Assembly (NCBI GenBank): GCA_029953675.1
Contig: JAMWBK010000011.1
Location: 434,001 to 498,000, forward strand
Direction of reading: 5' to 3'
Length of the DNA: 64,000 nt
From: Rhodosorus marinus CCMP1338
Taxonomy: Eukaryota; Plantae; Rhodophyta
Under the pieces are notes generated by a model. It was given only the letters and a program-made list of their open reading frames with translations, was not told the origin of the DNA and did not search any database. The position numbers and the translations under genes are program-made. Of this stretch, positions 8,518 to 33,845 are shown in pieces. The stretch's first letter is position 1; each line of letters begins with the position of its first letter.

Positions 8518-9883
8518 ATGATGAGGTTGAGTGCTTTAATTCTGGTCACCCTATTAGGGTTCACAGTGGCGGTTCCATTGATGCAGAAAGTTCATCTTGC
8601 TAAGAACGTACAGGCAGATGTTCAATCTCGGGCACTCCCAGCAGCCGGGGTTGAGGTTGAGGTTGAGAAGGCCGGGCCTGGGGTTGAGGTTGAGTCGGCC
8701 GAAGCTCGCCGTGGGGTTGGGGTTGAGTCGGCAGAAGCTCGCCGTGGGGTTGAAGACCCTGTAGCCCGCGTTGAGGTTGAGGTTGAGAAGGCCGGGCCTG
8801 GGGTTGAGGTTGAGTCGGCCGAAGCTCGCCGAGGGGTTGAGGTTGAGTCGGCCGAAGCTCGCCGTGGGGTTGAAGCTCGTCGTGGGGTAGAAGATCCTGC
8901 AGCCCGCGTTGAGGTTGAGGTTGAAAAGGCCGGACCTGGGGTTGAGGTTGAGTTGGCCGAAGCTCGCCTTGGGGTTGAGGTTGAGAAGGCCGGACCTGGG
9001 GTTGAGGTTGAGTCGGCCGAAGCTCGCCGTGGGGTTGAAGATCCTGCAGCCCGCGTTGAGGTTGAGGTTGAAAAGGCCGGACCTGGGGTTGAGGTTGAGT
9101 TGGCCGAAGCTCGCCTTGGGGTTGAGGTTGAGAAGGCCGGACCTGGGGTTGAGGTTGAGTCGGCCGAAGCTCGCCGTGGGGTTGAAGATCCTGCAGCCCG
9201 CGTTGAGGTTGAGGTTGAAAAGGCCGGACCTGGGGTTGAGGTTGAGTCGGCCGAAGCTCGCCGTGGGGTTGAAGATCCTGCAGCCCGCGTTGAGGTTGAG
9301 GTTGAAAAGGCCGGACCTGGGGTTGAGGTTGAGTCGGCCGAAGCTCGCCGTGGGGTTGAAGCTCGTCGTGGGGTAGAAGATCCTGCAGCCCGCGTTGAGG
9401 TTGAGGTTGAAAAGGCCGGACCTGGGGTTGAGGTTGAGTTGGCCGAAGCTCGCCGTGGGGTTGAGGTTGAGTTGGCCGAAGCTCGCCGTGGGGTCGAGGT
9501 TGAGTCGGCCGAAGCTCGCCGTGGGGTCGAGGTTGAGAAGGCCGGACCTGGGGTTGAGGTTGAGTCGGCCGAAGCTCGCCGTGGGGTTGAGGTTGAGGCG
9601 GCAGAAGCTCGCCGTGGGGTTGAAGATCCTGTAGCCCGCGTTGAGGTTGAGGTTGAAAAGGCCGGACCTGGGGTTGAGGTTGAGTCGGCCGAAGCTCGCC
9701 GTGGGGTTGAGGTTGAGGAGGCCTACTCCGGGGTTGAGGTTGAGGAAGGACGAAGCCGGAGTTGAGGTTGAGAAGGACGGAGCCGGCGTTGAGGTTGAGG
9801 AGCCCGTAGTCGGCGCTGAAGTTCCCGTGCAGTTCTTTGGAATTGCGGAAACAAGAGATCGTATTATCAACAACTTCAACTAG
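8518..9883 (+). CDS. Secreted acidic Glu/Val-rich repeat protein, copy 1; ORF stops at 9765 and the conserved C-tail is out of frame
   Basis: Signal peptide MMRLSALILVTLLGFTVA-VP, followed by modules VEVEKAGPG, VEVESAEARRG and VEDPAARVE. An extra base at ~9745 puts EEPVVGAEVPVQFFGIAETRDRIINNFN* in another frame. Confidence 0.75.
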
Positions 9884-10169
9884 AGTGAAACTGGTAACCA
9901 ACTTTGCTCGCTTGTTCTAGAAATGTCGCGCGAGTTTAAACTGCTGATATAGTTATCCTCATAAAATACAAAGATTCTTAGCAATACCTATCGCGCGAAC
10001 GCTGGACTAGAGTTGGTGACACGGTTGAAGTGGAAGAGTAACTGAGGCCAGCCTCGGCTAGCAGCGCCGGGCCTTCAATTGCAGATCTTCTGGTCCGTGT
10101 CGCCAATCGACGCGCAGTATTTGGATCTTGCCGTCAATTGCCCGACATCCCCGTTTATTCAGAGCACTA

Positions 10170-10960
10170 TCTTCAACTTGCCCCATGTGAAAAATACCTA
10201 TCTTCCATCTGGCGCCCTATAGTCTTCTTTCCCCCCCGCCCACTCGCCTTGCGAAGTATGGGGTGCTGCTTCACCTCTAAATGATTTACTACCGTTCCAA
10301 CAATTTGTGTGGAGGGTTTTGGGTTTTTGTGAGGCGTTTGTAGTGATTTTCGCTGCTTTAGGTCTCTCGTGCTACTTTTTGGAGGCATCCACACCCTTCC
10401 GTGGCTGGTTCCCAAGTTTTTCGGCCTTTTCCGGAACTAACGCGGTTGTTTTTCCGTGGTTCCGGGGGTCGTTCTTCGAATCCTTCAATTATGGTTTTTA
10501 CCTGGTTGCGTGTTCTCACTTGTGATGCAGTAGACGGAGAGCTCTTGGCTCCCTCAGGATCGGACGGGAATTCGGGATTTGACCTGTGCGGCGGCTCAGT
10601 GCCTTCCGCTGATTTTCCTGGGCACTGGTTGGCATCTTGTCCGCAGGTCCAAGGAGCCCGGACTCGACGCCATACGCGGCTCTACCGCTTGCTGTTCCGC
10701 TTTCTTCGTTCTCAGGTGTTGGCGGGCACGGACCGAGAGGTGGAGTATGAGGTCCCCCTGCGCGGTGGCAACGGCAATTGCTGAAGCGATTGACGCCCCA
10801 GTAGTGCAACGGGTGGCGGACCTCGGAGTCACTGATCTGACTGCTCGCGGGAGTGAGTACATCGACCTTTCTACCACTTGTCCCCAGGCTACCAGATACT
10901 TGCAGCGTCTGCTCGACGCCGAGGCGCTGCAACTCGGTCAATACCGCAACTGAGGGAATC
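10170..10960 (+). mobile_element. Old degenerate RLE element (family E); paralogous copies at ~21540-22330 and ~30700-31445
   Basis: Remnant LCGGSVPSADFPGHWLASCPQVQGARTRRHTRLYRLLFRFL (CCHC knuckle plus RH motif) and QRVADLGVTDLTARGSEYIDLS. Confidence 0.75.
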
Positions 10961-11029
10961 CCAGTACGCTTCGGCTATGTTAGACTCTGCGCTTCGCCAT
11001 TCGGCATTGTCCTACCGGTTGTTCCACTT

Positions 11030-11720
11030 ACCATCAAGTGCTTTGGTTTAGTTGATAGCGCGTGTTCTCGTTGGCTCTTTCGGAGGATGAAGGGGAGAAA
11101 CCGGTATGATAATGTCGACTCGCGAAACGTAGACTGCAACATCGCCTCAGCTTATTGGGATTTTTCCAATTGCCCCGTTGACCGAGCTGCAGCTCAACAG
11201 CACCAACCGGATACAGGAAGGTACCAGGTCGCCTGAGTACAACTGGTAGAAATTTCAATATACTCACTTCGATGAGCCCTCAGATCAGTTAGCGAAAGCT
11301 TGCCTTTCTTCAGGTTTATTCAGAGCCTAAACTACCTGAAAAGCGAGAGACAAGACGCTGATGACGCGAGTCTACAAACAAAGCAGCATTTGAGGGCTAC
11401 AGGGTCAAAGAAAGCTCCGTGAGCAGACTATCTAGACGCCCTGGGTCGTTGCGAAAGATACCTCGCAGCCAGCGAGAACCTAGACTATCTATGCTAGTAA
11501 AGTCCAGACTATCTATCAAGCTAAAGCATTCAATAATGGGAGGGACAAACCGGTATGTCACGGCCGAATCGCAAAAAGTAGGGTTTGACATCGCTGCCCT
11601 GTACTGTGATTCTTTCACATGCCGCATGGACCGAGCTGCAGTTCCTGGACGCCGAGCGGACGCAGTTTCAGGTGTCTGGTCGCCTGAGGACGAGGGATGG
11701 AGAGGTTCCGGCTCCTGATT
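11030..11720 (-). mobile_element. Two stacked family B-like 3' fragments; similar stacks at ~17117-17445 and ~22330-22985
   Basis: Contain the terminal motif tttattcagagcctaa(c)ta and YRFVPPIIECFSLIDSLGSRWLRGIFRNDPGRLDSLLTELSLTL. Confidence 0.8.
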
Positions 11721-14484
11721 AATATTTCCTAAAAGCACTGGATGATATCTGACGGTTTGCTGGAATTCGCAAATTTGATAATTCAATAGGCGAAGTGACA
11801 GCTTGTCGCTCCAAAAATAATCATGATTCAATATCCGCAATGGAGATGATTGATTATTAGACGAACAATGATTGAAAATTCGGACATTTTATCGGACCCG
11901 CAATCAGACTGTGTTTTGAATATTTTCAACTCGTCGTCTAGACTGTCCAATTAGCTTCGAGAAGTTTGGAAACTCAATGGGCAGGAGAATATTTGATTTC
12001 ACACCACCCGAAGTTTCTAATTTTGTCTATAGTCTATCTAAGACAAAATAACGGACGTGTCATATAACCGTTATCAGACAGTTTATGACTACCCTATCAT
12101 TTGGCTTCTCAACAGGCTACGTGCGCTAAAAAAGGAAAAAAACATGAATTCATATGGAGAACTTTTCCAGATTCGCCTAAGTCCCGCATTGTTGGGATTT
12201 TCGATCGTGATACTGAATTACGCGACAATATCTGAGGCATTGACAGGTTCCGATTAAACCATTCGTTCGACAGGTTTTATTGATAACTCACGGGTGGGCA
12301 TCTCATCGTGTTTGGACGAAGGTAACTATTTAGTAGTTCTCTGGACAGTCCAAACGGGAACTGTTGGTAGAGATTGAGAGCGCATGGGAGAGAGACTTTT
12401 GGTACGGGTTTACCAAACAGTACGGACATGAGCATTCTATAGGGCTTTTCGCCGGTCGCGAACACCCCATCGGCGCGAGAGGCATGTATAGCGCAAAAGA
12501 TCGAAGCGTTCGGTCCCGCTTGCCAAACTTCGTCAACGCTTTCTCCTTTGCCAGTTGTGTTAACAATCAAGCTTTAGGTGGAAGCGTGAACGGTTGAGTT
12601 TTTTGTTCTCGGTTTCCAGTACGGAGAAACTTTGGGTTTTTACTTTACGGATCTTCGATTTGAGTCCTCCACCTGTTGTTTCGGGATCGTTTTTGGTTTG
12701 AAGAACACACATGCTCTCCACACGTGGATTTTGAGTTGTTTTCACTCCATTTGAATGGTGCGTCGTTGATGTCCTAGAAGTGGGAGTGGCCCCGCCCTCG
12801 GAGCATGTTTTTAGTTTTGTTATTTTCTCATTTGGTTGCCAGATCTGTTTTAATTGTGAGACTGAGGTCCCGAAATAGGGTACGCTAGGAAGCACGCACA
12901 GACCGCAAAAAAAGGAAAAACGATTGATTACTAGCCACTGACCGACTCTAATAGGAGACTAACAACCTTTCCGTTGATGAGTTCCTTCTGCGTGTGAGCA
13001 GATTGTGCACATTATCCGGGCGTCCCTGAGCATCTGCGGAAATCGCTCCTCTCCGCCTGGATCGCGTTGACAGACAGGCGCTCGCCCAACAATTCGCTCG
13101 TTATTTCCCGGAAGTCCCTCCTGCCTTAGCGCAGGGTTAGCCCTACCGCCGGATGATATGCCCTCGTTCTAATCTCACCAAGGAGACCGATTGGGCCCGA
13201 TCCTGCGCGCGCCAGCTCTATTCCCTGTTCTCGATCACCTGCGGAAGTGTTTCCCCAAAATCAACGTCTGGCTTTTCATAACGATTTCTCGCCCCTGGCC
13301 CCCGTACATCATACTAGAAATAGGTTTTGCAATGGAGCCACGACCAGCTGCGGAGGATGGTCAAAGAGAACTTCGAGATGCGCATCCGATGTTCAATCAA
13401 CGCTAGTCGAATAATCAATCATTTCATTTCCGGATCAGCCTTTTGGATCATAATTATTTCTTGGTATGAGAACCTCTGTCTCAGCGTCCTGACTTCTAAT
13501 TAAGTCTCGGCTTGCTAGAAAAGACTATCACGTAACGAATCATGACTACTTGTGAAACGATGGCCTGCCGTACCGTTGTTTGTGGGGCAAGGACTGGGAG
13601 TAGAACAAGCGCATTCCAAAAGGAAGTTTGAGATACTGGACAGCAATCGGTCGTTATCGGAGCATTTAGCGGACGAAGCCTCTACGTTTATTTTCTATTC
13701 AGGTTCGAAAAACTTAAATTGGAGGGGAGTCCTCGGCAAACGCCCTTCAGTATTTCCAAATGCAGGTGCGGTAAACGTTGCTCAGACTTATTTTTAACCT
13801 ATGCAATCGGACGTTCTTTTTTCGGACGGAGATGACAACCTTATGCAGGAGTACAAAACCGTAATCCTCATCCGGAACTACTGAGAGTTCGTTTGGAAAG
13901 CTAGTGCAAGTCTTGGCCGCGCGTTCGCGGCATTAGACGGACAGAAATTTAGCATTTCTCCCTAGTTTCTAGTTCCCCTTCACGGCCTGAGCAGCGCTTC
14001 AGGCTAGCTAGTAAGTCCATCCAGTATAAGTATACACAATCTATTTTTGAATCGCGCTAGAAAGTTTGAGCGCGTGTGTAAAAGAGAGTCGAAGACTTTG
14101 AATGCGGACTGTCACCAAAACTCTCTAATAAGCGCTGACAGTTAGTCAGGAGCGGCAGGAGCGTAGGGGTGGCGGTCACGAACCAATTCACCCGGTTCGG
14201 TTGTGTGAAGCACTGCGAAATGAACCTATTTTGCTTTCCAATTGTCGCTGAATCCCCTTCAGAAACCCCGATGGTTACTGTCAGCGGCGTCATGTAGCGT
14301 GGAGGTGGCAGTCACTCCGGTCATTGCTCTGGGCGGAACGAGGTACATTTCTCCTTCGAGGAATACCGGAATTTGCACACCTGACGTACGCGTTCTCTCA
14401 GGAATGCTTGTTCACAGCCCTTGCGCAGATACTGGTTTTTTGTTTTTTTTTCAGCCTCCGATTAAACCATTCGTTCGATACTGG

Positions 14485-14660
14485 GTTAAAGTGTGGGTAA
14501 AGCTGACGGTTACACTGGTCTGGGGTTACCGCATTTTGTGGCAGCACAATGCTGCGCTAGTTGAGCACGCGATCAAGAAAGATCGCGCAGATAGACCGAT
14601 ATTTCCCCTAAGTAGAATTTAGATGAGACTCCTGGACAGGGAGTCCAGGTTTGATTAGTG
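14485..14660 (+). mobile_element. Possible further RLE family (F) 3' fragment
   Basis: LWQHNAALVEH resembles the LWRSNAAL C-terminal motif. This segment is absent from the paralogous upstream blocks. Confidence 0.45.
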
Positions 14661-14900
14661 CGTACGTAGTGATCGTGAGATGCGCTACATTAGGTAGCTG
14701 CGCAATAAAGGCTACGGGGTTATAAGTAAAGCGCCGCAAGCTAGGTGTGGGATGGTTTGAAGAAGGGATATGGGACAAGTCCTACATTGGTAGAAGCGGG
14801 GAATCTGATGAGCGCTGACAACTGAATTTGCAGAGGAGTGAAAGAGTTTGTAGACCTTGGGCAGAAGTTGTCTAGTTGGTTTAGAAAGAGTGGATTGAAC

Positions 14901-15430
14901 ATGATGAGGTTGAGTGCTTTAATTCTGGTCACCCTATTAGGGTTCACAGTGGCGGTTCCATTGACGCAGAAAATTCATCTTGCTGAGAAAGTACAGGCAG
15001 ATGGTCAGGCATGGGCACTCCCAGCAGCCGGGGTTGAGGTTGAGCCGGGGGTTACGTGGGTTGAGGAGCATGTAGCCCGCGTTGAGGTTGAGGTTGAGGT
15101 TGAGGAGGCCCAATCCGGGGTTGGGTTTGAGAAGGCCGGACCTGTGGTTGAGGTTGAGAAGGTCGGACCTGTGGTTGAGGTTGAGAAGGCCGGACCTGGG
15201 GTTGAGGTTGAGCCGGGGGGTACGTGGGTTGAGGAGCATGTAGCCCGCGCTGAGGTTGAGGTTGGGATCCCGTAGCCCGCGTTCAAGTTGAGGAGTCCGG
15301 AGCCGGGGTTGAGGTTGAAGAGGCTGGAGCCGGCGTTGAGATTGAGGAGCCCGTAGTCGGCGCTGAAGTTCCTGTGCAGTTCCTTGGAATTTTGGAAACA
15401 AGAGATCGTATTATCAACAACTTCAACTAG
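14901..15430 (+). CDS. Secreted Glu/Val-rich repeat protein, copy 2 (short); 1-bp deletion at ~15265 gives a stop at 15275
   Basis: Same signal peptide, with modules VEVEKAGP(V/G) and VEPGVTWVEEHVAR. The tail VPVQFLGILETRDRIINNFN* is out of frame. Confidence 0.72.
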
Positions 15431-15933
15431 AGTGAATCTGGTAACCAACTGTGCTCGCTTGTTCTGGAAATGTTGCGCGAGTTTAAACTGCTGATATAGT
15501 TATCCTCATAAAATTCAAAGATTCTTAGCAAATACCTATCGCGTGAACACTGGCCTAGAGTTGGTGACACGGTTGAAGTGGAAGAGGAACTGCCGCGATC
15601 AGCCTCGGCTAGGACCGCCCGGCTTTCAATTGCAGATCTTCTGGTCTCGGACGTCGCCGCTCGATTCGCAGTATTTGGATCTTGCTGCCACTTCACCTGT
15701 ACTGACTTACCACCGTTCCAAATTGTTGGAGGGCTTTGGGTTTTTGTGAGGGTTTTTTAGGGATTTTCGCTGCTTTAGGTATCTCGTACTACTTTTTGGA
15801 GGCATCACCGCGAACACCCCATCGGTGTGAGAGGCATGCATAGCTCCAAAGATCGAAGTGGTCGCTGCCGCTGGGCAACCTTCGTCAACGCTTTCTCCTT
15901 TGCCAGTTGTGTTAATAATGAAGCTTTAGGTGG

Positions 15934-16145
15934 GCTTTACTAGCATATCCTGAAGCGCTACGCAATGATGAAAAGGAACTAAGAACTAGGGAGGGAAGCG
16001 TGCAAACCCCTGCGCCGATGGCGCGTTTCGGCAAGCATGCTGCTGGAATATCGCCACAAGGCGGCACTCAACCGCCGTAAAAGCGCCAAGTACTCAGTAG
16101 GATGCTCAGCGAAACATTTCCGCAACCACTCTAAACCCGACTTTC
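15934..16145 (-). mobile_element. Family C element, 5'-truncated
   Basis: Reverse complement of the 5738-5970 type, with TSD tttaggt(g/a)g at 15925-15933 and 16146-16154. Paralogs show the empty site gctttaggtggaagcgtg. Confidence 0.8.
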
Positions 16146-17539
16146 TTTAGGTAGAAGCGTGAGCGGTTGAGTTTTTAGTTTTCGGTTTCGAGTACAGAGT
16201 GACTTTGGGTTTTTACTTTGCGTATCTTCAATTTGAGTCCACTTGTTGTTTGGAGATCCTTTTTGGATTGAAGAAAACACGCGCTCTCCCCACGTGGATT
16301 TTAGGTTGTTGCTACTATATTTGAACGGTGCGTCGTTGATGTCCTAGGAGTTGGAATGCCCCCCACCTCGGAGCATGTTTTTAGTTTTGGAATTTTGTCA
16401 TTTGCCAGATCGGTTTTAATTGGGAGACTGAGTCCCCAAATGTGGTACGAAGCACCCCCGGACCGCAAAAATGGAAAAACAATTGATTACTCTTGCCACC
16501 GACTCCCTGACTCGGAGACTAACAACCTTTACTTTTACGAGGAATCTGCCTTCCCAATTGGAGGCTCGTAATTCAAACTTTACTGGTTGCATTTCCAATA
16601 TTATTAGCTCCTGAGAGCGTTTCCCGGAGTAGTTGCGAACGGCTGTTTGCAGCTATTCACAACTCTTTCCAGCAGGCTCGGCTGTTTGCTGTAATTCGAA
16701 GTCTAAAACCTGTGGATTTTGGGTGGAAATAGTGAGCTATCAGACACCCACCACAATATCAAATGGAAATTATTTTTGCAACGCCTGATTGTTGTTTGGC
16801 TATGCATGTGAATCTCACAAGGGGGGTCGATTGGGGTGCATCAAACGTCAGTAAGGATGTGTTTGAGCGACTTTGATATGGGGGCCTTGGTGGAGGTATG
16901 CTCAGAGTAGTTCCAAGTTCTCTTCCGCATGTAACGTGCGACTCCCAGGCCCAATGAAGGATCCGTTCCCAATCACCCGAAGCTTCGACCAATTGCGATT
17001 CCGAAGACGCTGCGGGAGCTGACGGCGCTAGCACTCGCCAAGCGAGTGCTAGCGAGTTCGCGCGAGAACGTGCGCGAGATTTGTTCGTGCCAGTACAATT
17101 GGGCATCCAAGTTCCTTCGATGATGGTTTATTCAGAGCCTAACTACCCTGAGAAGCGAGAAAATTAACCCCAGGTTAACGAAACCCCAGGCTATTGTCTT
17201 AAACAAGACGCTCATGACGCACGTGCACCAATAAAGCAAGCGTTGGAGCACCAGAGGATCAAGGACAGCTAATTGAGGAGGCTATCAAGGCGCCCTGGGT
17301 TCTTCCGAAAGAGCACACCAAGCTAACGAGAACCTACACTATCAACTAAACTAAAGCACTCGATGACGAGTGAAGCAAACTGGTAGGTAGGACAATGCCG
17401 AATCGCGAAGCGTAGAGTCTAACATTGCCGCAGCATACTGGGATTCCTTCCGTTGATGAGTTCCTTTGCGTGTGAGCAGATTGTGCGCACTATCCGAGCG
17501 TCCCTGAGCATCTGCGAAATCGCTCTTCTTTCCCTGGAT

Positions 17540-18427
17540 ATCCTTTCTTGGGACTTGCACCGTGCTGCATATGGCCGACTCCTCGCGCAGATGGTCTCAT
17601 CTTCTCGCGCTCGCGCCCGCCTACGTAGTCTTGGAGGGGTTCTTAGCTCTCAGTGGCTCATGACCGTACCAGCCTTTCCGCCACTCACACTGTCGGATTT
17701 CGAAGTGCGTACTTCACTGCGCTTATACCTCGGCTTACAGCAGCCCCCTTGGCCGTACGAGATGGGTTCGTCGTGCCCTCTCTGCTCTCAGACTGAAGAC
17801 AACGCAGATTTTGGCGCCCACCTGCTCGCTAGTTGCCCGGCGGTGAAAGGTGCTCGAACCCGCCGCCACACACGGATCTTGAACCTGTTATACCGGGAAC
17901 TTCGGCCTATAGTCCGGCAAGCCGGTCTGGAAATCGAACGTGAGAAACCTTTACCCGTCGCGGACTTTCAAAATGATGAACGCCGTGTAGCCGACCTGGT
18001 GATCACCTGTGACGACAGCCGCCGTACCACATACGTTGATCTTGCTGTTCCTAACCCTCAAGCTAGTCGTTATCTCCCGGCTGCGGGGGAGCGCCGTGGA
18101 TCTGCCGCCGCCAGCATGAGACGCCGCAAAGAGATCAAATACGCGGGGGCTTTGTCTTCCCCTGGTGTTCGTGCTTCGGCACTAGCACATCGCTTGGTAC
18201 CCCTGATCATTGAGTGCTTTGGGTTCATGGACTATGTTGGTTCTCGCTGGCTTCGGGAGTTGTTCCGCGAACGCCCTGACCGTCTTCAATCGTTGTTTAC
18301 CCGCTTAAGTTTCGTGCTGTGGCGCATGAATGCCGCTTTGATGTTGGAGGCGCGAGTACTTCGCCGCGCTTAGTCTTTTTTTCCCCTCGGGGTTTTTTTT
18401 TTCAGCCTCCGATTAAACCATTCGTTC
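17540..18427 (+). mobile_element. Family A RLE non-LTR retrotransposon, 5'-truncated, intact C-terminal ORF
   Basis: CCHC CPLCSQTEDNADFGAHLLASC, RTRRHTRIL, endonuclease RRVADLVI...YVDLAVPNP...KEIKY. 3' UTR is T7-cccctcgggg-T9-cagcctccgattaaaccattcgttc. TSD ggat; empty site at ~6815. Confidence 0.93.
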
Positions 18428-20052
18428 GGATCTGCATAACGCATGCAATCGCGTTGACAGGCAGGCCCTCGCCCAACAATTCAATCGTTATTTCCCGGAA
18501 GTCCTGCCTTAGCGCAGGGTTATCCCTACCACCGGATGATATGCCCTCGTTCTAATCTCACCAAGGAGACCGATCTGCCCGATCCTGCACGCGCCAGCTC
18601 TATTTCCTGTTCTCGATCACCTGCGGAAGCGTTTCCCCGAAATCAACGTACTGACTTTTCATGACGATTTCTCGCCCCTGGCCCCTGTGTACATCATACT
18701 GGACATACTAGACTAGGTTTTGCAATGGAGCCACAACCACCTTGCGGGGGATGGTCAGAGAGAGGTTCGAGATGCACATCCGATGTTCAATCAACGCTAG
18801 TCGAATAATCAATCATTTCATTTCCGGATCAGCCTTTTGGATCATAATTATTTCTTGGTATGAGAACTTCTCTCTGATGTCATGACCTCTGATTACATAT
18901 CTAAAAGCTTGCGAAATTGTCATGTAACGAATCATGACGACTTGTGAACTGATGGCCCCCCCTGCCGTACCGTTGTTTGTGAGGCAAGGACTGGGAGTAG
19001 AACAATCGCATTCCAAAAGGAAGTTTAAGATACCGGAAAACAATCGGTCGTTATTCGGAGCTTTTAGCCTACGAAGGCTCTGCGTTTATTTTCTATTCAG
19101 GTTAGATAAACTTAAATTGGAGGGGAGTTCTCAGCAAACGCCTTTTAGTACTTACCAATCTCAGGTCCGGTAAACGTCGCTCAGACCGCTCGATTTTTTT
19201 TTAACCTACGTATCCGCACGTTCTTTTTTCGGACGGAGATGACAACCTTATACAGGAGTACAAAACCGTAATCCTCATCCGGAACTACTGAGAGTTCGTT
19301 TGGAAAGCAAGTACAAAAACAAGTCTTGGCCGCGCATCCGCGACATTAGACGGACAGAAATTTAGCATTTCTCCCTAGTTGCTAGTTCCCTTTCACGCCC
19401 TGAGTAGCGCTTCAGGCTATGCTAGTAAGTCCATCCAGCATAAGTCTACACAATTTGTTTTTGAATAGCGCTAGAAAGTTGGAGCACGTACGTGAAAGAG
19501 AGACCCCGAATGTGGATTGTCACCAAAACTCTCTAATGAGCGCTGACAGTTAGCGGGAGCGTCAGGCAGCGTAGTGGTGGCAGTCACGAACCAATTCACC
19601 CGCGCGCTCCCGGTTAGTTTGCATGAAGCACAGCGAAATGAACTTATTTTGCTTTCCAACAGTCACTGAGTCCCCTTCAGAAACCCGATGGTTACCATCA
19701 GCAGCGTCAGGCAGCGTGGAGGTGGCAGTCACTCAGGTCATTGGGCTCTGGGCGGAACGAGGTACATTGCTCCTCCGAGGAATACTGGAATTTCAACACC
19801 TGACGTACGCATTCTCACAGGAATGCTTGTTCACGGCCTTTGCGCGGGTACGTGGTCTGGGATTATAAGTAAAGCGCCACAAGCTAGGTGTTCGGATGGG
19901 TTGAAGAAGGGATATGTGACAAGTCCTACAGTCCTACATTGGTAGAAGCCAGGAATCTGATGAGCGCTAATAACTGAATTTGCAGAGGAGTGAAAGAGCT
20001 TGTAGACCGTGGGCAGAAGTTGTCTAGTTAGTGTAGAAAGAGTGGATTGAAC

Positions 20053-21273
20053 ATGATGAGGTTGAGTGCTTTAATTCTGGTCACCCTATTAGGGTTCACA
20101 GTGGCGGTTCCATTGATGCAGAAAGTTCATCTTGCTAAGAACGTACAGGCAGATGTTCAGGCATGGGCACTCCCAGCAGCCGGGGTTGAGGTTGAGGCGG
20201 CCGAAGCTCGCCGTGGGGTTGAAGATCCTGCAGCCCGCGTTGAGGTTGAGGTTGAGTCGGCAGAAGCTCGCCGTGGGGTTGAGGTTGAGTCGGCCGAAGC
20301 TCGCCGTGGGGTTGAGGTTGAGTCGGAAGCTCGCCGGGGGGTTGAAGCTCGCCGTGGGGTTGAAGATCCTGCAGCCCGCGTTGAGGTTGAGGTTGAGAAG
20401 GCCGGACCTGGGGTTGAAGTTGAGTCGGCCGAAGCTCGCCGGGGGGTTGAGGTTGAGTCGGCCGAAGCTCGCCGGGGGGTTGAGGTTGAGTCGGCCGAAG
20501 CTCGCCGGGGGGTTGAGGTTGAGTCGGCCGAAGCTCGCCGGGGGTTGAGGTTCAGGCGACCTACTCCGGGGTTGAGGTTGAGGCGGCAGAAGCTCGCCGT
20601 GGGGTTGAAGACCCTGTAGCCCGCGCTGAGGTTGAGGTTGAGTCGGCCGAAGCTCGCCGTGGGGTTGAGGTTGAGGCGGCAGAAGCTCGCCGTGGGGTTG
20701 AAGACCCTGTAGCCCGCGCTGAGGTTGAGGTTGAGTCGGCCGAAGCTCGCCGTGGGGTTGAAGATCCTGCAGCCCGCGTTGAGGTTGAGGTTGAGAAGGC
20801 CGGACCTGGGGTTGAAGTTGAGTCGGCCGAAGCTCGCCGGGGGGTTGAAGCTCGCCGGGGGGTTGAAGCTCGCCGTGGGGTTGAAGATCCTGCAGTTCGC
20901 GTTGAGGTTGAGGTTGAGAAGGCCGGACCTGGGGTTGAAGTTGAGTCGAACGAAGCTCGCCGGGGGGTTGAGGTTGAGAAGGCCGGACCTGGGGTTGAAG
21001 TTGAGTCGGCCGAAGCTCGCCGTGGGGTTGAAGCTCGCCGTGGGGTTGAAGCTCGCCGTGGGGTTGAAGCTCGCCGTGGGGTTGAAGATCCTGCAGCCCG
21101 CGTTGAGGTTGAGGAGGCCTACTCCGGGGTTGAGGTTGAGGAAGGACGGAGTTGAGGTTGAGAAGAACGGAGCCGGCGTTGAGGTTGAGGAGCCCTTAGT
21201 CGGCGCTGAAGTTCCCGTGCAGTTCTTTGGAATTGCGGAAACAAGAGATCGTATTATCAACAACTTCAACTAG
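20053..21273 (+). CDS. Secreted Glu/Val-rich repeat protein, copy 3; a G5 run at 20540-20544 shifts the frame, stop at 20619
   Basis: Same signal peptide and repeat modules as copy 1. The conserved tail ends at 21273. Confidence 0.72.
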
Positions 21274-23305
21274 AGTGAAACTGGTAACCAACTGTGCTCG
21301 CTTGTTCTAGAAATGTCGCGCGAGTTTAAACTGCTGATATAGTTATCCTCATAAAATACAAAGATTCTTAGCAATACCTATCGCGCGAACACTGGACTAG
21401 AGTTGGTGACACGGTTGAAGTGGAAGAGGAACTCTCGCGATCAGCTTCGGCTAGTACCGCCCGGCTTTCAATTGCAGATCTTCTAGTCTCGGACGTCGCC
21501 GCTCGACGCGTAGTATTTGGATCTTGCCGTCACTTGCCCGACATCCCCCTTTATTCAGAGCGCTATCTTCAACTTGCCCCATGTGAAATACCTCTCTTCC
21601 ATCTGGCGCCTATAGTCTTCTTTCCCCCCTGCCCACTCGCGAAGTATGGGGTGCTGCCTCACCTCTCAATGACTTACCACCGTTCCAAATTGTTGGAGGG
21701 TTTTGGGCTGCTTCCCAAGTTTCTTGGCTTTTTGGGGGACTGACGCGGGTGTTTTATCAGTGTTTCCTGGGGTCGCTCTTCGAACACGAGTTTTGGTCAG
21801 TTTTCAATTGTGGTTTTTATTTGGTTGCGTGTTCTCACTAGTGATGCAGTAGACGGAGCTCTCGGCTCCCTCAGGGTCGGACAGGAATTAGGGATTTGAC
21901 CTCTGCGGCGGCTCAGTGCCTTCCGCTGATTTTGCTGGGCACTGGTTGGCACCTTGTCCGCAGGTCCTAGGAGCCCGGACGCCATACGCGGCTCTACCGC
22001 TTGCTGTTCCGCTATCTTCGTTCTCAGGTGCTAGTGGGCACGGACCGAGATGTGGAGTATGAGGTCCCCCTGCCGGTGGCAACGGCAATTGCTGAAGCGG
22101 TTGACGCCCCAGTAGTGCAACGGGTGGCGGACCTTGTGGTCACTGATCTGACTGCTCGCGGGAGTGAGTACATCGACCTTTCTACAACTTGTCCCCAGGT
22201 TACCAGATACTTTTCAGCGTCTGCTCGACGCCGAGGCGCTGCAACTCGGTCAATGCGGCAACTGAGGGAATCTAAGTACGCTTCGCCTATGTTAGACTCT
22301 ACGATTCGGCATTGTCCTACAGGTTGTTCCACTTACCATCGAGTGCTTTGGTTTAGTTGATAGTGTGTGTTCTCGTTGGCTCTTTCGGAGGATGAAGGGA
22401 ACAAACCGGTATGATAATGCTGAGTCGCGAAACGTAGACTGCAACATCGCCTCAGCTTGTTGCGATTTTTCCAATTGCCCCATTGACCGAGCTGCAGCTC
22501 AACAGTACCAACCGGATACAGGGAGGTACCAGGTCGCCTAAGTACAACTGGTAGAAATTTCAATATACTCACCTCGATGAGCCCTCAGATCAGTTCGCGC
22601 AAGCTTCCCTTTCTTCAGGTTTATTCAGAGCCTAACCTATCTGAGAAGCGAGAGACCAGACGCTGATGACGCGGGTCTACAAACAAAGAAGCATTTGAGG
22701 GCTACAGGGTCACAGAAAGCTCCGTTAGCAGACCATCTAGACGCCCTGGGTCGTTGCGAAAGATACCTCGCAGCCAGCGAGAACCTTGACTATCTATTAA
22801 GCTAAAGCATTCAATAATGACGGGGACAAACCGGTATGTAACGGCCGAATCGCAAAAAGTAGGGTTTGACACCGCTGCCGCGTGCTGTGATTCTTGCACA
22901 TGCCGCATGGACCGAGCTGCAGCTCCTCGACGCCGAGCGGACGCTGGCAGGTACCTGGTCGCCTGAGGACAAGGGATGGATAGGTTCCCTGTCCTGTTTA
23001 ATATTCCCCAAAAGGATTGGATGATAACTGACGGTTTGTGGGAACTCAAAATAATGATAATTCAATACACGAGATGACAGCTTGTCATTCGGAAACATTA
23101 TCATGATTCAATATTCTCATCGAAGATGATTGATTATTAGACTAACGTTGATTGAGAAATATCAGAGAATTTTATTGAACTCACAATCAGACTGTGTTTT
23201 GGATATTTTCAACACCACACCACACGAATTTTCTAATTTTGTTTATAGTCTATCTAAGACAAAATGAATGAATGGTTTAAGACAAAATAACGGACGTGTC
23301 ATATA

Positions 23306-24809
23306 CGAACGAATGGTTTAATCGGAGGCTGAAAAAAAAACCCCGAGGGGAAAAAAATACTAAGCGCGGCGAAGTACTCGCGCCTCCAACATCAAAGCGG
23401 CATTCATGCGCCACAGCACGAAACTTAAGCGGGTAAACAACGATTGAAGACGGTCAGGGCGTTCGCGGAACAACTCCCGAAGCCAGCGAGAACCAACAGA
23501 GTCCATGAACCCAAAGCACTCAATGATCAGGGGTACCAAGCGATGTGCTAGTGCCGAAGCACGAACACCAGGGGAAGACAAAGCCCCCGCGTATTTGATC
23601 TCTTTGCGGCGTCTCATGCTGGCGGCGGCAGATCCACGGCGCTCCCCCGCAGCCGGGAGATAACGACTAGCTTGAGGGTTAGGAACAGCAAGATCAACGT
23701 ATGTGGTACGGCGGCTGTCGTCACAGGTGATCACCAGGTCGGCTACACGGCGTTCATCATTTTGAAAGTCCGCGACGGGTAAAGGTTTCTCACGTTCGAT
23801 TTCCAGACCGGCTTGCCGGACTATAGGCCGAAGTTCCCGGTATAACAGGTTCAAGATCCGTGTGTGGCGGCGGGTTCGAGCACCTTTCACCGCCGAGCAA
23901 CTAGCGAGCAGGTGGGCGCCAAAATCTGCGTTGTCTTCAGTCTGAGAGCAGAGAGGGCACGACGAACCCATCTCGTACGGCCAAGGGGGCTGATGTAAGC
24001 CGAGGTATAAGCGCAGTGAAGTACGCACTTCGAAATCCGACAGTGTGAGTGGCGGAAAGGCTGGTACGGTCATGAGCCACTGAGAGCTAAGAACCCCTCC
24101 AAGACTAAGTAGGCGGGCGCGAGCGCGAGAAGATGAGACCATCTGCGCGAGGAGTCGGCCATATGCAGCACGGTGCAAGTCCCAAGAAAGGATATTTTGC
24201 AGCGCATCCGTGCGTGCTTGAGCTCGGCTCCCAGCGCGCTGGGAATCATCAGGAGGATCAACTGGAACTTCTTCTTCTGCGGCAACCACTGGGTCAATCT
24301 CCCCTAGAACAGGTTCAGGCGCAGGACGAATCCCCGGGGCGGAGTCTCGAGAGCGGTCAAATACAGCTCGCCAGTCAGGAAGACGGGGTTGAACGGTTTC
24401 GGGGAGACTAGTACAGGAATTCAGGGCGGTTTGGAGCTCCAGAAACAAGTCTTGGGCGCTTTCCGGTACCGTGGGAAGCAAGACACCCCGCGAGAGGCTC
24501 GCCATCAAATTGCGGAACTTCGAGATACCCAAGCTGCTCAAAGTGGGAAGTGCGGTTCCCCAGGCCCCTACTGCGGCTGCAGGTTGGACCACAACACGAT
24601 TGCAGAGGCCCAGTCCCCCCAATCGCAATGGGAGGCCTACCTGGGCGCGCACGACATCACAGGTGGGTCGCGGCAGAGCGCTCAGCTCTTCATCGAGAAA
24701 ATACCCTAGGTCACGGAAACTTTCAGCATCCGCACGAGTGGCCAACCACCGGCCCCAATGAGTTGGAAGTGAGCGAAGCCAATAGGTTAACCGCTGACTG
24801 CAACAATAC
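23306..24809 (-). mobile_element. Family A RLE element, 1.5 kb, 5'-truncated, 6-bp TSD
   Basis: The 461-aa ORF (24745-23360) covers the thumb/linker (QVGLPLRLGGLGL), CCHC and RLE. TSD catata at 23300-23305 and 24810-24815; empty site at ~12060. Confidence 0.93.
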
Positions 24810-25514
24810 CATATAACTGCTATCAGACAGTTTATGACAACAATATCATTTGCCTTCTCAACAGGCTACGTACGCTAAAAAAGGAAAACGTGAGTTTATA
24901 TGGAGAACTTTTCCAGATTCGCCAAAGTCCCGCATTGTTCGGACTTTCGATCATGACACTGAATTACGCTAATACTTAACCATTCGTTCGTAATACTGAG
25001 ACGATATCTGACGCATTGACAGGTTTTATTGATAACTCCTGGGTCTGCATCTCATCGTGTTTGGACGAAGGTAACTATTTAGAAGTTCTCTGGACAGTCC
25101 AAGCGGGAACTGTTGGTGGAGATTGGGAGCGCATGGGAGACAGACTTTTGATATGGGTTTACCAAAACAGTACGGACATAAGCATTCTATAGGGCTTTTC
25201 GTCGGTTCTAACACCCCATCGGTGCGAGAGGCATGTACAGCGCAAAAGATCGAAACGTTCGTTGCCGCTGGCCAAACTCCGTCAACGCCTTCTCCTTTGC
25301 CGGTTGTGTTAATAATCAAGCTTTAGGTGGAAGCGTGAAAGGTTGAGTTTTTAGTTTTCGGTTTCGAGTCCGGGAGAAACTTTGCCTTTTTACTTTACGT
25401 TTCTTCGATTTGCGTCCTGTTTGGAGATCATTTTTGGTTTGAAGAACACACGCTCTCCCCACATGGATTTTAGGTTGTTTTCACTATATTGGAATGGTGC
25501 GTCGTTGATGTCCT

Positions 25515-26640
25515 GTAGGCTTTCCCTTTGGGTACAACAGGGTGATCCCTTGTCCCCTTTCCTACATGCCTGTGGACTACAACTCGTCTTGCTTTGTCTT
25601 CGCTCCGAATTCCCGCAGGTTCGTACGGTTGCATACCACGACGACGTGTGCCTCCTGGGGCCTCCCGATACTCTAGCGCTCGCTTATGATCGTCTCCGCT
25701 CCTTGGCTTCGCGGGTTGACTTGGAGGTTGATCATCACAAATCGTTCTACTGGGGAGGTGTACCTGCACAAGAGCAGCGTCGTTCCAGGATATTTGGAGA
25801 CCGGATGGTTTTGTCCACTTAGGCATCCCCTACGGGTCGCCGTCCTTCGTTGAAGGCGAGTTGCTGCAGCTCCTCGGTAAGCACAGACAGCTGGTTGCAG
25901 AGCTTCGACGGCTACCTCCGGGCTCTCTCCAGTGCTCGTTGTTGCTGTTTCGGTATTGTTGCAGTCAGCGGTTAACCTATTGGCTCCGCTCACTTCCAAC
26001 TCATTGGGGCCGGTGGTTGGCCACTCGTGCGGATGCTGAAAGTTTCCGTGACCTTGGGTATTTTCTCGATGAGGAGCTGAGCGCTCTGTCGCGACCCACC
26101 TGTGATGTGAACTTCGGCCTATAGTCCGGCAAGCCGGTCTGGAAATCGAACGTCAAAAACCTTTACCCGTCGCGGACTTTCAAAATGATGAACGCCGTGT
26201 AGCCGACCGGGTGATCACCTGTGACGACAGCCGCCGTACCACATACGTTGATCTTGCTGTTCCTAACCCTCAAGCTAGTCGTTATCCCCCGGCTGCGGGG
26301 GAGCGCCGTGGATCTGCCGCCGCCAGCATGAGACGCCGCAAAGAGATCAAATACGCGGGGGCTTTGTCTTCCCCTGGTGTTCGTGCTTCGGCACTAGCAC
26401 ATCGCTTGGTACCCCTGATCATTGAGTGCTTTGGGCTCATGGACTCTGTTGGTTCTCGCTGGCTTCGGGAGTTGTTCCGCGAACGCCCTGACCGTCTTCA
26501 ATCGTTGTTTACCCGCTTAAGTTTCCTGCTGTGGCGCATGAATGCCGCTTTGATGTTGGAGGCGCGAGTACTTCGCCGCGCTTAGTCTTTTTTTCCCCTC
26601 GGGGTTTTTTTTTTTCAGCCTCCGATTAAACCATTCGTTC
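25515..26640 (+). mobile_element. Family A element with reverse transcriptase motifs, internally deleted and frameshifted
   Basis: Encodes VQQGDPLSPFLHACGLQ...VAYHDDVCLLGP. An internal deletion at ~26108 joins the thumb region to the RLE region. The A-type 3' tail is present. Confidence 0.9.
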
Positions 26641-26692
26641 GGTTAAAAATAAGTCTGAGCAACGTTTACCGCACCTGCATTTGGAAATACTG

Positions 26693-26805
26693 GACTTTAC
26701 TAGCATAGCCTGAAGCGCTACGCAAGGCGTGAAGATGAACTAATAACTAGGGAGGGAAGTATGCAACCCCAGGCGCCGATGGCGCGCCTCGGAAAGCATG
26801 TCGCT
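26693..26805 (-). mobile_element. Family C 3' fragment
   Basis: Family C terminus in reverse orientation, with TSD atactg at 26687-26692 and 26806-26811. Confidence 0.75.
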
Positions 26806-27512
26806 ATACTGAAGGGCGTTTGCTAAGGACTCCCCTCCAATTTAAGTTTTTCGAACCTGAATAGAAAATAAACGCAGAGGCTTCGTCCTCTAAATGCTCC
26901 GATAACGACCGATTGCTGTCCGGCATCGCAAACTTCCTTTCGGCATGCGATTGTTCTACTCCCAGTCCTTGCCCCACAAACAACGGTACGGCAAGGGGGG
27001 CTATTATTTCACAAGTACCATGATTCGTTACATGACAGGTTCGCGAGCTGAGATATATAATCAGAAATCATGGCGTGAGACGGAGGTTCTCATACCAAGA
27101 AATAGCTATGATCCAAAAGACTGATCCGGAAATGAAATGATTGATTATTGGACTAGCGTTGATTGAACATCGAATGTGTATCTTGAAGTTCTCTTTCAAC
27201 CCCCCTTCCAATTAGGGAATATGCCACAATCTGCCCCCGCTCGGAACCTTTGTCAATATTCAGAGAAGCAAGCTACCCTGAGGCGTGGAGAGTGAGATGA
27301 TGATGACTCTCGTCCAAGAGAACAGGGCTGCTGCGGAGAGAAATCTGCAGGACGAAATTCTTCCAATCTCTCTGGTCTGTCCGCGCTTCCTAGCCTAACC
27401 TATTTGGGGACCTCAGTCTCCCAATCAAAACCGATCTGGCAATCAAATCAGAAAATTACAAACTGAAAACATGCTCTGAGGGGGGGGGGGGCACTCGCAC
27501 TTCTAGGACATC

Positions 27513-27590
27513 GACGAATGGTTTAATCGGAGGCTGAAAAAAAAAACCCCCAGGGGAAAAAAGACTAAGTGCGGCGAAGAACTCGCGCCT
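27513..27590 (-). mobile_element. Family A 3' end (short)
   Basis: Sequence gacgaatggtttaatcggaggctgaaaaaaaaaacccccaggggaaaaaagactaagtgcggcg. Confidence 0.85.
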
Positions 27591-27699
27591 GATATTCTTT
27601 TTTTGGACGGAGAAGCAGAAAACATGAACGGGTCTTCTGCTTATTGTAGTCATCGGATTGACATTCATCGGCATGAGGCTGTCTATTATTAGTAGTTGT

Positions 27700-27965
27700 G
27701 GTCTTGCACGCGGATTGTAAGTTCTTTTCGCGATTCGGCGGTGACGTACCGGTTTGTCCCCCTCATTAGTAAACGCTTTGGCTTGATAGATAGTGTAGGT
27801 TCTCGCTGGCTGCGAGGTATCTTTCGCAACGACCCAGGGCGACTAGATAGTCTGCTCACGGAGCATTCTTTGACCCTGTGGCGCTCAAATGCTGCTTTGT
27901 TTGTAGACACGCGTCATCAGCGTCTTGTCTCTCGCTTCTCAGAGTAGTTAGGATCTGAATAAACG
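27700..27965 (+). mobile_element. Family B-like 3' fragment
   Basis: Encodes FRDSAVTYRFVPLISKRFGLIDSVGSRWLRGIFRNDPGRLDSLL...RFSE* followed by ctgaataaac. Confidence 0.85.
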
Positions 27966-29271
27966 CGAAGTCCAATAGTCAATCATTTCATTTATGGATC
28001 AGCCTTTGTATCAATAACTATTTCTTGGTATTCTCATACCAAGAATTAATGACATGAGAAAGAGGCGAGAACCTCTTTCTCATGTCATGACTTCTAATGA
28101 ATGAATTATGTCTCGGCTTGCGAAAAAAAGACTATCACGTAACGAATCATGACTACTAGTGAAATGATAGTCTGCCGTACCGTTGTTTGTGGGGCAAGGA
28201 CTGGGAGTAGAACAATCGCATTCCTAAAGGAAGTTTAAGATACCGGACGGCAATCGGTCGTTATCGGAGCATTTAGCGGACGTAACCTCTACGTTTATTT
28301 TCTATTCAGGTTCGAAAAACTTAAATTGGAAGGGAGTCCTCGGCAAACGCCCTTCAGTATTTCCAAATGCAGGTGCGGTAAACGTTGCTCAGACTTATTT
28401 TTAACCTATGCAATCGGACGTTCTTTTTTCGGACGGAGATGACAACGCTATGCAGGCTTAAAACACCGTAATCCTCATCCGGAACTAAGAGTTCGTTTGG
28501 AAAGCAAGTACAAGTCTTGGCCGCGCGTCCGCGACATTAGACGGACAGAAATTTAGCATTTCTCCCTTGTTTCTAGTCCCCCTTCACGCAGTGAGTAGCG
28601 TTTCAGGCTAGCTAGTAAGTCGATCCAGTATAAGTATACACAATCTATTTTTGAATCGCGCTAGAAAGTTTGAGCGCGTGTGTAAAAGAGAGACTCCGAA
28701 TGCGGACTGTCACTGAAACTCTCTAATAAGCGCTGACAGTTAGTGCGGCACGAGCGTGGGGGTGGCAGTTACGAACTAGTTCACCGGGTTCGGTTGTGTG
28801 AAGCACTGCGAAATGAACTTATTTTGCTTTCCAATTGTCACAGACTCCCCTTCAGAAAGCCGATGGTTACCGTCAGCAGCGTCAGGCAGCGTGGAGGTGG
28901 CAGTCGCTCCGGTCATTGCTCTGGGCGGAACGAGGTACATTTCTCCGCCAAGGAATACCGGAATTTCCAGGCCTCACGTACTCGATCAGCCTCCGATTAA
29001 ACCATTCGTTCGATCTCGCAGGAATGTTTGTTCACAGGCTTTGCGCGAATACCTGGTCCGTGATATTTCGCTGCGGTAGGTAGCTGCCGAATAAAGGCTA
29101 CGGGGTTATAAGTAAAGCGACGCAAGCTAGGTGTTGGGATATGGGAGAAGTCCTGCATTGGTAGAAGCGGGAAATCTGATGAGCGCTGAGAACTAAATTT
29201 GCAGAGGAGCGAAAGAGTTTGCAGACCGTCTGTAGAAGTTGTCTATTTGGTGTAGAAAGATTGGATTGAAC

Positions 29272-30351
29272 ATGATGAGGTTGAGTGCTTTAATTCTGGT
29301 CACCCTATTAGGGTTCACAGTGGCGGTTCCATTGATGCAGAAAGTTCATCTTGCTAAGAACGTACAGGCAGATGTTCAATCTCGGGCACTCCTAGCAGCC
29401 GGGGTTGAGGTTGAGAAGGCCGGGCCAGGGGTTGAGGTTGAGTCGGCCGAAGCTCGCCGTGGGGTTGAGGTTGAGGCGGCAGAAGCTCGCCGTGGGGTTG
29501 AAGACCCTGTAGCCCGCACTTTTTTTCTAGATGAGGCGCTTGGAAGCCTGGTTGAGGTTGAGGAGGCTGGAGCCCTGGTTGAGGCTGTTGACGTTGGAGC
29601 AGGCGTTGAGGTTGAGAACCACGTAACCCGCACTTTTTTTATAGGTGAGGATGCTGGAGCCGGGGTTGAGGTTGAGGATGCTGGAGCAGGCGTTGAGGTT
29701 GAGAACGTAGCCCGCACTTTTTTTCTAGATGAGGCGCTTGGAAGCCTGGTTGAGGTTGAGGAGGCTGGAGCCCTGGTTGAGGCTGTTGACGTTGGAGCAG
29801 GCGTTGAGGTTGAGAACCACGTAACCCGCACTTTTTTTATAGGTGAGGATGCTGGAGCCGGGGTTGAGGTTGAGGATGCTGGAGCAGGCGTTGAGGTTGA
29901 GAACGTAGCCCGCACTTTTTTTCTAGATGAGGCGCTTGGAAGCCTGGTTGAGGTTGAGGAGGCTGGAGCCCTGGTTGAGGCTGTTGACGTTGGAGCAGGC
30001 GTTGAGGTTGAGAACCACGTAACCCGCACTTTTTTATAGCTGAGGATGCTGGAGCCGGGGTTGACTTTGAGGATGCTGGAGCAGGCGTTGAGGTTGAGAA
30101 CGTAGCCCGCACTTTTTTTCTAGATGAGGAGGCTGGAACCGGGGTTGAGGCTGATACGGCCGAAGCTCGCCTTGGGTTTGAAGAGCCCGTAGCCCGCGTT
30201 CAAGTTGAGGAGGAAGGAGGCGGGGTTGAGGTAGAGGAGGCTGGAGCAGGAAGGCGTTCAGGTTGAGGAGCCCGGATCCAGCCCTGAGGTTCCCGTACAA
30301 TTCGTTGGAATTTCGGAAACAAGAGATCAAACTATCAACAAATTCAACTAG
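29272..30351 (+). CDS. Secreted Glu/Val-rich repeat protein, copy 4, with a novel 66-aa (198-bp) repeat; stop at 30039
   Basis: Same signal peptide. Repeat units start at 29512, 29710, 29908 and 30105. A T6 (instead of T7) run at ~30030 creates TAG. The tail VPVQFVGISETRDQTINKFN* is out of frame. Confidence 0.75.
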
Positions 30352-33842: not shown

Positions 33843-33845
33843 AAC

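Follow-up and report, generated by a model that had tools for sequence, protein, structure and literature searches.

A tandem cluster of frame-disrupted Val-Glu repeat paralogs in the red alga Rhodosorus marinus: a candidate family of secreted proteins

When four neighbouring stretches of DNA start with the same hydrophobic peptide, run on into Val-Glu repeats and end in the same tail, do they encode a family of secreted proteins, or are they what is left of one? This question is raised by a locus on the nuclear contig JAMWBK010000011.1 of Rhodosorus marinus CCMP1338 (assembly GCA_029953675.1), of which a window of 64,000 nt, its first base at about position 434,001 of the record, was analysed. 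R. marinus CCMP1338 is a unicellular red alga of the Stylonematophyceae (PMC10250338), and the window holds four paralogs, all on the plus strand, at 8518-9883, 14901-15430, 20053-21273 and 29272-30351 (copies 1-4). The likeness among the four is far beyond chance and their coding origin is well supported. The best reading of the cluster is a fast-evolving repeat-protein family of an ordinary kind that has partly decayed. We tentatively favour a lineage-specific tandem cluster whose four paralogs specify selection-shaped secreted, Cys-free, acidic Val/Glu/Ala/Gly/Arg repeat proteins, disrupted at the C-terminus and with a matrix-type role.

The genome assembly, made by NextDenovo from Oxford Nanopore GridION reads, went through three rounds of Pilon polishing with 100-bp Illumina reads, and genes were called by BRAKER with RNA-seq (PMC10250338). 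The assembly method matters because small indels within repeats could be errors, whilst the use of RNA-seq means that a gene model is expected at any clearly expressed locus. Homology searches and folding were carried out on uninterrupted open reading frame (ORF) pieces only. The phase of each GTNGAR hexamer was tracked relative to the ATG of its own copy, and a synonymous test scored distinct single-base variants between repeat units in each phase.

Four copies with a common start and tail

The copies are segments of a tandem duplication of ~5.5-9 kb, with flanks that are 85-95% identical (85-89% from unit to unit) and with retroelement debris inside the units. Upstream of every copy the TATA-like motif TTATAAGTAAAGCG occurs once, 166-190 nt before the ATG, and is followed by a leader. 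From the ATGs at 8518, 14901, 20053 and 29272, an identical hydrophobic start of 21 codons, MMRLSALILVTLLGFTVAVPL, is found in 4/4 copies; then come a more variable, pro-like stretch of 25 residues and an array based on GTTGAG (Val-Glu) hexamers. By inspection, the layout of the N-terminus fits the n-h-c type of signal peptides (MMR, a 16-residue hydrophobic core, then TVA/VP), and an AlphaFold2 (AF2) model of copy 1 has a helix at residues 6-22. Frames aside, the four also have in common the tail peptide ...EVPVQFxGIxETRDxxINxFN, which stops at 9881-9883, 15428-15430, 21271-21273 and 30349-30351, and at least 60 nt of 3′ flank. The initial annotation had described four paralogs with a common signal/pro region and C-tail. 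These sequences are indeed present, but not as four intact proteins: in 4/4 copies frameshifts separate the tail from the ATG, a disruption that had been overlooked. The parts of each copy are as follows.

8336-8517, plus strand: conserved 5′ block of copy 1; TATA-like TTATAAGTAAAGCG at 8336-8349, 182 nt before the ATG, and leader
8518-9765, plus strand: N-terminal ORF of copy 1, 415 codons; MMRLSALILVTLLGFTVAVPL start, pro-like region, 74 in-phase GTNGAR hexamers and 16 Arg-Arg; TGA at 9763-9765
9745-9760, plus strand: frameshift interval of copy 1; 16-nt spacer where 15 or 18 nt would hold phase; same place as in copy 3
9761-9883, plus strand: tail piece of copy 1 in +1 phase, ending in VEVEKDGAGVEVEEPVVGAEVPVQFFGIAETRDRIINNFN; TAG at 9881-9883
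9884-10131, plus strand: conserved 3′ flank of copy 1, common to copies 1-3; copy 4 shares only the first ~60 nt
14720-14900, plus strand: conserved 5′ block of copy 2; TATA-like motif at 14720-14733
14901-15275, plus strand: N-terminal ORF of copy 2, 124 codons; its own modules, PGVTWVEEHVAR and VEVEKxGP, and no dibasic site; TAG at 15273-15275
15261-15286, plus strand: frameshift interval of copy 2; 1 nt missing, GTTGGGATCCCG against GTTGAAGATCCTG-like sequence in the other copies
15287-15430, plus strand: tail piece of copy 2 in another phase, ending in EVPVQFLGILETRDRIINNFN; stop at 15428-15430
19863-20052, plus strand: conserved 5′ block of copy 3; TATA-like motif at 19863-19876
20053-20619, plus strand: N-terminal ORF of copy 3; Val-Glu phase to ~20541, then out of phase; stop at 20617-20619
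20540-20544, plus strand: first frameshift of copy 3; G5 run against G6 in sister units, may be a Nanopore error
20544-21155, plus strand: middle piece of copy 3; 37 hexamers in phase 2 and 12 Arg-Arg; TGA at 21153-21155
21141-21150, plus strand: second frameshift interval of copy 3; 10-nt spacer with the same extra base as copy 1
21151-21273, plus strand: tail piece of copy 3, ending in EVPVQFFGIAETRDRIINNFN; stop at 21271-21273
29106-29271, plus strand: conserved 5′ block of copy 4; TATA-like motif at 29106-29119
29272-30039, plus strand: N-terminal ORF of copy 4, 255 codons; copy-1-like start, then 198-nt (66-codon) units with RTFF boundaries; TAG at 30037-30039
30030-30035, plus strand: first frameshift of copy 4; T6 run against T7 in other units, may be a Nanopore error
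30042-30266, plus strand: middle piece of copy 4 in phase 2; TGA at 30264-30266
30237-30261, plus strand: second frameshift interval of copy 4; 4-nt insertion, GGAGCAGGAAGGCGT against GGAGCCGGCGT in the other copies
30262-30351, plus strand: tail piece of copy 4, ending in EVPVQFVGISETRDQTINKFN; TAG at 30349-30351

Repeat arrays and what they encode

Could the arrays be nothing more than a G-rich (GTTGAG)n minisatellite that by chance follows an ATG and a hydrophobic stretch? ORF length is uninformative here, with 4/6 frames open across the copy 1 array; moreover, codon use in the arrays is a monotonous GTT and GAG, and neither a gene model nor a homolog was found. Such a minisatellite is, however, hard to reconcile with the spacing of the hexamers. 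Distances from one hexamer to the next are multiples of 3 in 187 of 195 cases and fall into ten classes (6, 18, 21, 24, 27, 33, 48, 51, 54 and 60), all of them multiples of 3, as is every period reported by Tandem Repeats Finder. Every array, furthermore, begins in phase with its ATG. In the Val-Glu phase 12/24 distinct variants are synonymous against 26% expected (P=0.011), and 19/37 with overlapping module definitions (P=8e-4), compared with 0/20 and 6/18 in the other two plus-strand phases; among the plus phases the excess is therefore found in the Val-Glu phase only. One antisense phase is also in synonymous excess (10/18, P=0.04), perhaps owing to an overlap of its wobble positions with those of the sense frame, and the strand was therefore decided by the ATG and signal region. 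On the minus strand, ORFs of 433-441 aa that lack both an ATG and a signal were set aside as by-products of stop-free repeats.

The start of each copy tells the same story. Among the four, no column varies between -10 and +63 around the ATG, a span that includes the 63 nt of the signal peptide, compared with 14 per 100 nt upstream and ~10/60 in the pro region. Identity between units is 85-87% further upstream and about 94% downstream of a change that falls exactly at the TATA-like box. With signal-peptide codons invariant and the TATA-like block conserved, we regard a chance minisatellite as the least probable explanation of the locus, and a most improbable one.

Copies 1 and 3 are built from modules of 33 nt (GVEVESAEARR), 27 nt (GVEVEKAGP), 24 nt (GVEDPAAR) and 18 nt (GVEARR), whilst copy 2 has its own units and, in the array of copy 4, a 198-nt unit with RTFF at its boundaries takes over. 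The 33-nt module occurs 31-33 times and the 27-nt module about 19 times, alongside others; VEVEVEKAGPGVEVES and GVEVESAEARR are repeat-unit peptides of the cluster. That the middles are assembled from different modules, ending in RR-G in copies 1 and 3 and in R-TFF in copy 4, was correctly recognised in the initial annotation. The arrays evolve in the manner of minisatellites, by gain, loss and exchange of units between copies, always in codon phase, and this explains how different module sets come to lie behind an invariant signal peptide.

Beyond the signal region, the encoded pieces have an isoelectric point of 4.1-4.6; the net charge is -43 in copy 1 and -38 in copy 4. Copy 1 consists of 22% Glu, 20% Val, 16% Ala, 11% Arg and 11% Gly. 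Cys and N-x-S/T sites are absent, and aromatic residues are few. The signature of hydroxyproline- or Ser/Thr/Pro-rich wall glycoproteins is absent from these pieces, in which Pro makes up 4-7% and Ser about 4%, with no SP runs.

Alternating hydrophobic and charged residues favour amphipathic beta-strands, and charge screening triggers their assembly. Alternating VEVE had been likened to beta-sheet self-assembling, Ca-binding peptides. The modularity of the Val-Glu middles stands, and the beta tendency is weakly echoed by AF2: modelled without an alignment, copy 1 has beta-strands that coincide with the Val-Glu runs, at a predicted local distance difference test (pLDDT) of 65.8 and a predicted template modelling (pTM) score of 0.68. 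A Foldseek search of this model against the PDB returned only beta-helix/solenoid proteins, none of them significant (best E=0.09, TM score at most 0.27), with CsgA, the type protein of the curli-like beta-solenoid amyloids, at rank 20 (E=1.7). Given that AF2 is prone to stack perfect repeats, a beta-solenoid picture of the repeats is a weak hint from modelling.

By sequence comparison, the family is without detectable relatives and has no gene model in the collections searched. Pfam gave nothing above threshold for any piece, and there was no match to PDB sequences at E<=1. Word-index searches that set copy 1 in full, the first 48 residues and the tail against 5.8 billion clusters came back empty, without even a self-hit. 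When 1.84 billion representatives were searched exhaustively by phmmer with the N-terminal ORF of copy 4, six matches came up without a true relative among them; all were compositional matches to unrelated repeat proteins of 770-2034 aa, and 0 cover residues 1-45. Exact-product look-ups of the copy 1 and copy 2 ORFs, from the ATG and from an upstream GTG start, found nothing on record. Rfam had nothing in the window, a scan for bacterial promoters and terminators, of no relevance to this genome, was empty as well, and the literature search found nothing relevant on Rhodosorus matrix proteins. The view that this is an unrecognised family is therefore upheld by word-index, HMMER, Pfam and PDB sequence searches and by the lack of a gene model; the proposed check of the N- and C-ends, made with the first 48 residues and the tail, brought up no known family.

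Frame disruptions and what they imply

Hexamer phases show where each frame is lost. In order, copy 1 has 74 hexamers in phase 0 and 4 in phase 1; copy 2 has 15 in phase 0 and 4 in phase 2; copy 3 has 23 in phase 0, 37 in phase 2 and 4 in phase 0; and copy 4 has 30 in phase 0, 6 in phase 2 and 1 in phase 0. This makes six phase breaks, and a stop comes after every shift. Two of the six are pure differences of homopolymer length, G5/G6 at 20540-20544 and T6/T7 at 30030-30035, which could be Nanopore errors. The remaining four go back to three independent events: an extra base at the same spot in copies 1 (9745-9760) and 3 (21141-21150), the loss of 1 nt in copy 2 (15261-15286) and a 4-nt insertion in copy 4 (30237-30261).

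Premature stops in copies 1, 3 and 4 (9763-9765, 21153-21155 and 30264-30266) stand in the context xGT-TGA-G, with the tail in +1 phase. This context is probably the trivial outcome of reading GTTGAG out of phase. Programmed frameshifting is only remotely conceivable, copies 1, 3 and 4 needing +1 and copy 2 needing -1. An intron across the frameshift was rejected on inspection of the sequence: the acceptor-like CCCGTGCAG/CCCGTAG in the tails of copies 1-3 is not kept in copy 4, and GTTGAG makes a poor donor.

If the breaks were artefacts of assembly, the true genes would be intact, each with a signal peptide, repeats and the conserved tail. A Nanopore assembly whose only polishing came from 100-bp Illumina reads, poorly mappable in repeats of 18-33 nt, invites this explanation, as do the two homopolymer shifts and that of copy 2, which likewise lies in a short G run. 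However, neither the extra base of copies 1 and 3 nor the 4-nt insertion of copy 4 is a homopolymer change, both adjoin unique, polishable sequence, and the same context 27 nt downstream in copy 1 is free of error. Moreover, the retroelement copies in the window, 98-99% identical to each other, are nearly free of indels: over ~2.4 kb, the length of one T run (T9-T11) and a single indel of 4 nt are all that sets them apart in this respect. Small indels are therefore not widespread in the assembly, and most of the six frameshifts are probably real. We consider it unlikely that assembly error accounts for the disruption as a whole.

Where the shifts lie is informative. All of the three independent events outside homopolymers are found in the ~115-170 nt that precede the ancestral stop, and none falls in the ~4 kb of array; multiplying the three terminal fractions gives about 0.003, a rough and post hoc figure. 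Since these shifts are confined to the 3′ end, truncation seems to have been tolerated only near the C-terminus, which would most simply mean that selection acted on the signal-plus-repeat part whilst the tail was dispensable. The alternative is decay at a degenerate array edge. From its sequence, the best candidate for a working, tail-less gene would be copy 1, with its 415-codon signal-plus-repeat ORF. If the homopolymer indels of copies 3 and 4 are not mere errors of sequencing, both of these copies break off in mid-array.

That the cluster is wholly dead is nearly as probable as the reading that we favour. The locus would then represent a former family of secreted repeat proteins, with all four copies surviving as untranscribed or untranslated relics among retroelements and any working members elsewhere in the genome. 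This is possible, given six frameshifts in ~4.2 kb, of which one is common to copies 1 and 3 and so inherited rather than a random sequencing error, in an assembly where indels are rare in other repeats. All copies are separated by retroelement fragments, the substitutions in pro region and tail look neutral, and RNA-seq-guided annotation placed no gene models here. Set against decay of the whole cluster are the 63 invariant nt of the signal peptide, a promoter-proximal block conserved above its surroundings, the sparing of the array by non-homopolymer shifts, the synonymous excess in the Val-Glu phase and the 74 consecutive in-phase hexamers of copy 1.

Several observations weigh against the favoured reading of selection-shaped secreted proteins. 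From ATG to tail, 0/4 copies can be read in one frame, each needing one or two frameshifts, and these, as set out above, are for the most part probably real. Substitutions number about 8 non-synonymous to 1 synonymous in the pro region, which looks neutral, and about 7 to 3 in the tail, with no sign of purifying selection. The invariant start could itself reflect gene conversion, which occurs here: a 9-nt patch of the pro region reads caatctcgg (QSR) in copies 1 and 4 (8620-8628 and 29374-29382) and caggcatgg (QAW) in copies 2 and 3 (15003-15011 and 20155-20163), and since this is discordant with flank similarity, the flanks of copy 1 being closest to those of copy 3, it points to micro gene conversion between paralogs. 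The AF2 model of copy 4 is poor (pLDDT 43.8), and AF2 is prone to over-predict solenoids and to stack perfect repeats. Lastly, the cluster lies within a region rich in transposable elements, and the protein collections hold no gene model at the four loci, though BRAKER used RNA-seq.

Peptide precursor or wall component

A further possibility is that the products are polypeptide precursors, in which a kexin- or furin-like convertase cuts after Arg-Arg (in copy 4, after the Arg before TFF) and so frees many short acidic peptides, to serve as signals or to self-assemble. The initial annotation had pointed to a likeness with fungal KEX2-processed repeat proteins (KEPs), for which a screen used a signal peptide, at least three internal repeats and KR, RR or KK between repeats (PMC6339444). 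Formally, copies 1 and 3 match this screen, with a signal-like start, three or more repeats and RR between them (16 RR sites in copy 1, 21 in copy 3). Moreover, the Arg codons of EARR vary synonymously only, bar three Arg-to-Leu changes. The dibasic motif belongs to only two module types: such sites number 0 in copy 2 and 2-3 in copy 4, where they lie outside the main modules, and are thus not a family trait. Cuts after RR would divide copy 1 into fragments of 6-49 residues and of at least 8 kinds, no kind occurring more than twice; a repeated core peptide, like the near-identical cores of KEPs, is missing. KEPs also belong to another kingdom and have no homology to the cluster, in which Gly-Val follows the site and the X-Ala/X-Pro dipeptide signature is absent. 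The RR pairs may merely serve charge balance or the binding of sulfate. On balance we think a peptide-precursor mechanism unsupported and quite unlikely.

An extension of this mechanism takes Ustilago maydis Rep1, a KEP whose peptides stay attached to hyphae (PMC6339444), as its counterpart. Freed from convertase-processed polyproteins, acidic Val-Glu hairpins would self-assemble with seawater cations into mucilage fibrils, the paralogs would give different peptide sets, and the tail might be added conditionally, for example by stop-stimulated +1 frameshifting at xGT-TGA-G. We think this scheme very unlikely.

The wall-protein reading that we favour invites comparison with yeast FLO/HPF1-type and plant or green-algal repeat-rich wall proteins, in which a signal peptide is likewise followed by an in-frame tandem array. 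Such wall proteins resemble the cluster further in the rapid change of unit number and composition, in tandem duplication, in the lack of Cys-based folds and in being limited to a lineage. They differ in that there is no sequence relation, and the Rhodosorus repeats consist of Val/Glu/Ala/Gly/Arg rather than being rich in Ser/Thr/Pro, have no N-x-S/T and little Ser/Thr/Pro for glycosylation, and lack a hydrophobic C-terminus of the glycosylphosphatidylinositol type.

Designed amphipathic beta-sheet and beta-hairpin peptides are 8-20-mers of alternating hydrophobic and charged residues. The repeats share with them (Val-Glu)2-3 strands and Gly-Pro-Gly-type turns, and it is on exactly these runs that AF2 places its strands. 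In contrast, the cluster specifies natural polyproteins of 120-450 residues with 2-4 Val-Glu pairs per run, broken by helix-prone AEARR. Diatom silacidins and coccolithophore GPA are secreted, repetitive and strongly acidic, and some such proteins are cut at Arg-containing sites. Acidity in the cluster differs in coming from Glu alone, with hardly any Ser or Asp, and no homology was detected; Rhodosorus is not known to mineralise.

The surroundings of the cluster are rich in repeats. The 3′ part of a LINE-like (long interspersed nuclear element) retroelement is found in copies that are 98-99% identical at 17538-18428, 26109-26641 and 35523-36491 on the plus strand and at 23300-24800 on the minus strand, the high identity suggesting recent activity. 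Its ORF carries a CPLC...H...C finger and its fragments separate the Val-Glu gene copies; a neighbouring ORF at 25382-25822 has a weak, sub-threshold match to RVT_1. A mosaic of retroelement fragments without a called gene occupies 31000-41000, the nearest called gene lying at 41 kb, and tandem duplications of ~110 nt, mutually inverted, are found at 34636-34852 and 38208-38425. A called gene for 579 aa at 43514-45253 on the plus strand has a signal-peptide-like start, MGAAWIMTMILVCGLGVVFTAPL, with no Pfam family or detectable relative, and is a second secreted-protein candidate near the cluster. An ORF on the minus strand at 2058-3026, which lies 5.5 kb from the cluster, has a hydrophobic anchor at its N-terminus and a weak, sub-threshold match to Sulfotransfer_3. 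It may be relevant to sulfated wall polysaccharide, or its proximity may be coincidental; its exact product is not on record, and the real gene therefore probably has introns.

What might a product of the cluster do? Stylonematophyceae have 'thick mucilaginous cell walls' (PMC10250338), and the most likely role of an intact or tail-less product would be that of a structural or adhesive polyanion of such a wall. The predicted protein would enter the secretory pathway and lose its signal peptide, most plausibly after ...TVA. The mature polyanion would then consist of alternating Val-Glu strands with Gly-Pro turns between them, and beta-rich assemblies could form once its charge is screened by seawater Ca2+ and Mg2+. 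Alternatively, the Arg pairs may bind sulfated wall polysaccharide. By either route it would take a structural or adhesive part in the thick, mucilaginous wall that is typical of the class.

For a family with no relatives and no gene model, and disrupted in frame, the general lesson is limited. The cluster nonetheless shows plainly how the modules of a coding minisatellite are reshuffled among tandem paralogs, and it illustrates how repeat-rich secreted genes of this kind escape annotation in Nanopore-based algal assemblies. If expressed, it would offer natural alternating Val-Glu strand-turn repeats of relevance to cation-triggered biomaterials. Moreover, were at least one copy expressed, stylonematophycean red algae would have their first candidate for a protein of the extracellular matrix, in a class whose walls have, to our knowledge, been described almost only as polysaccharide.

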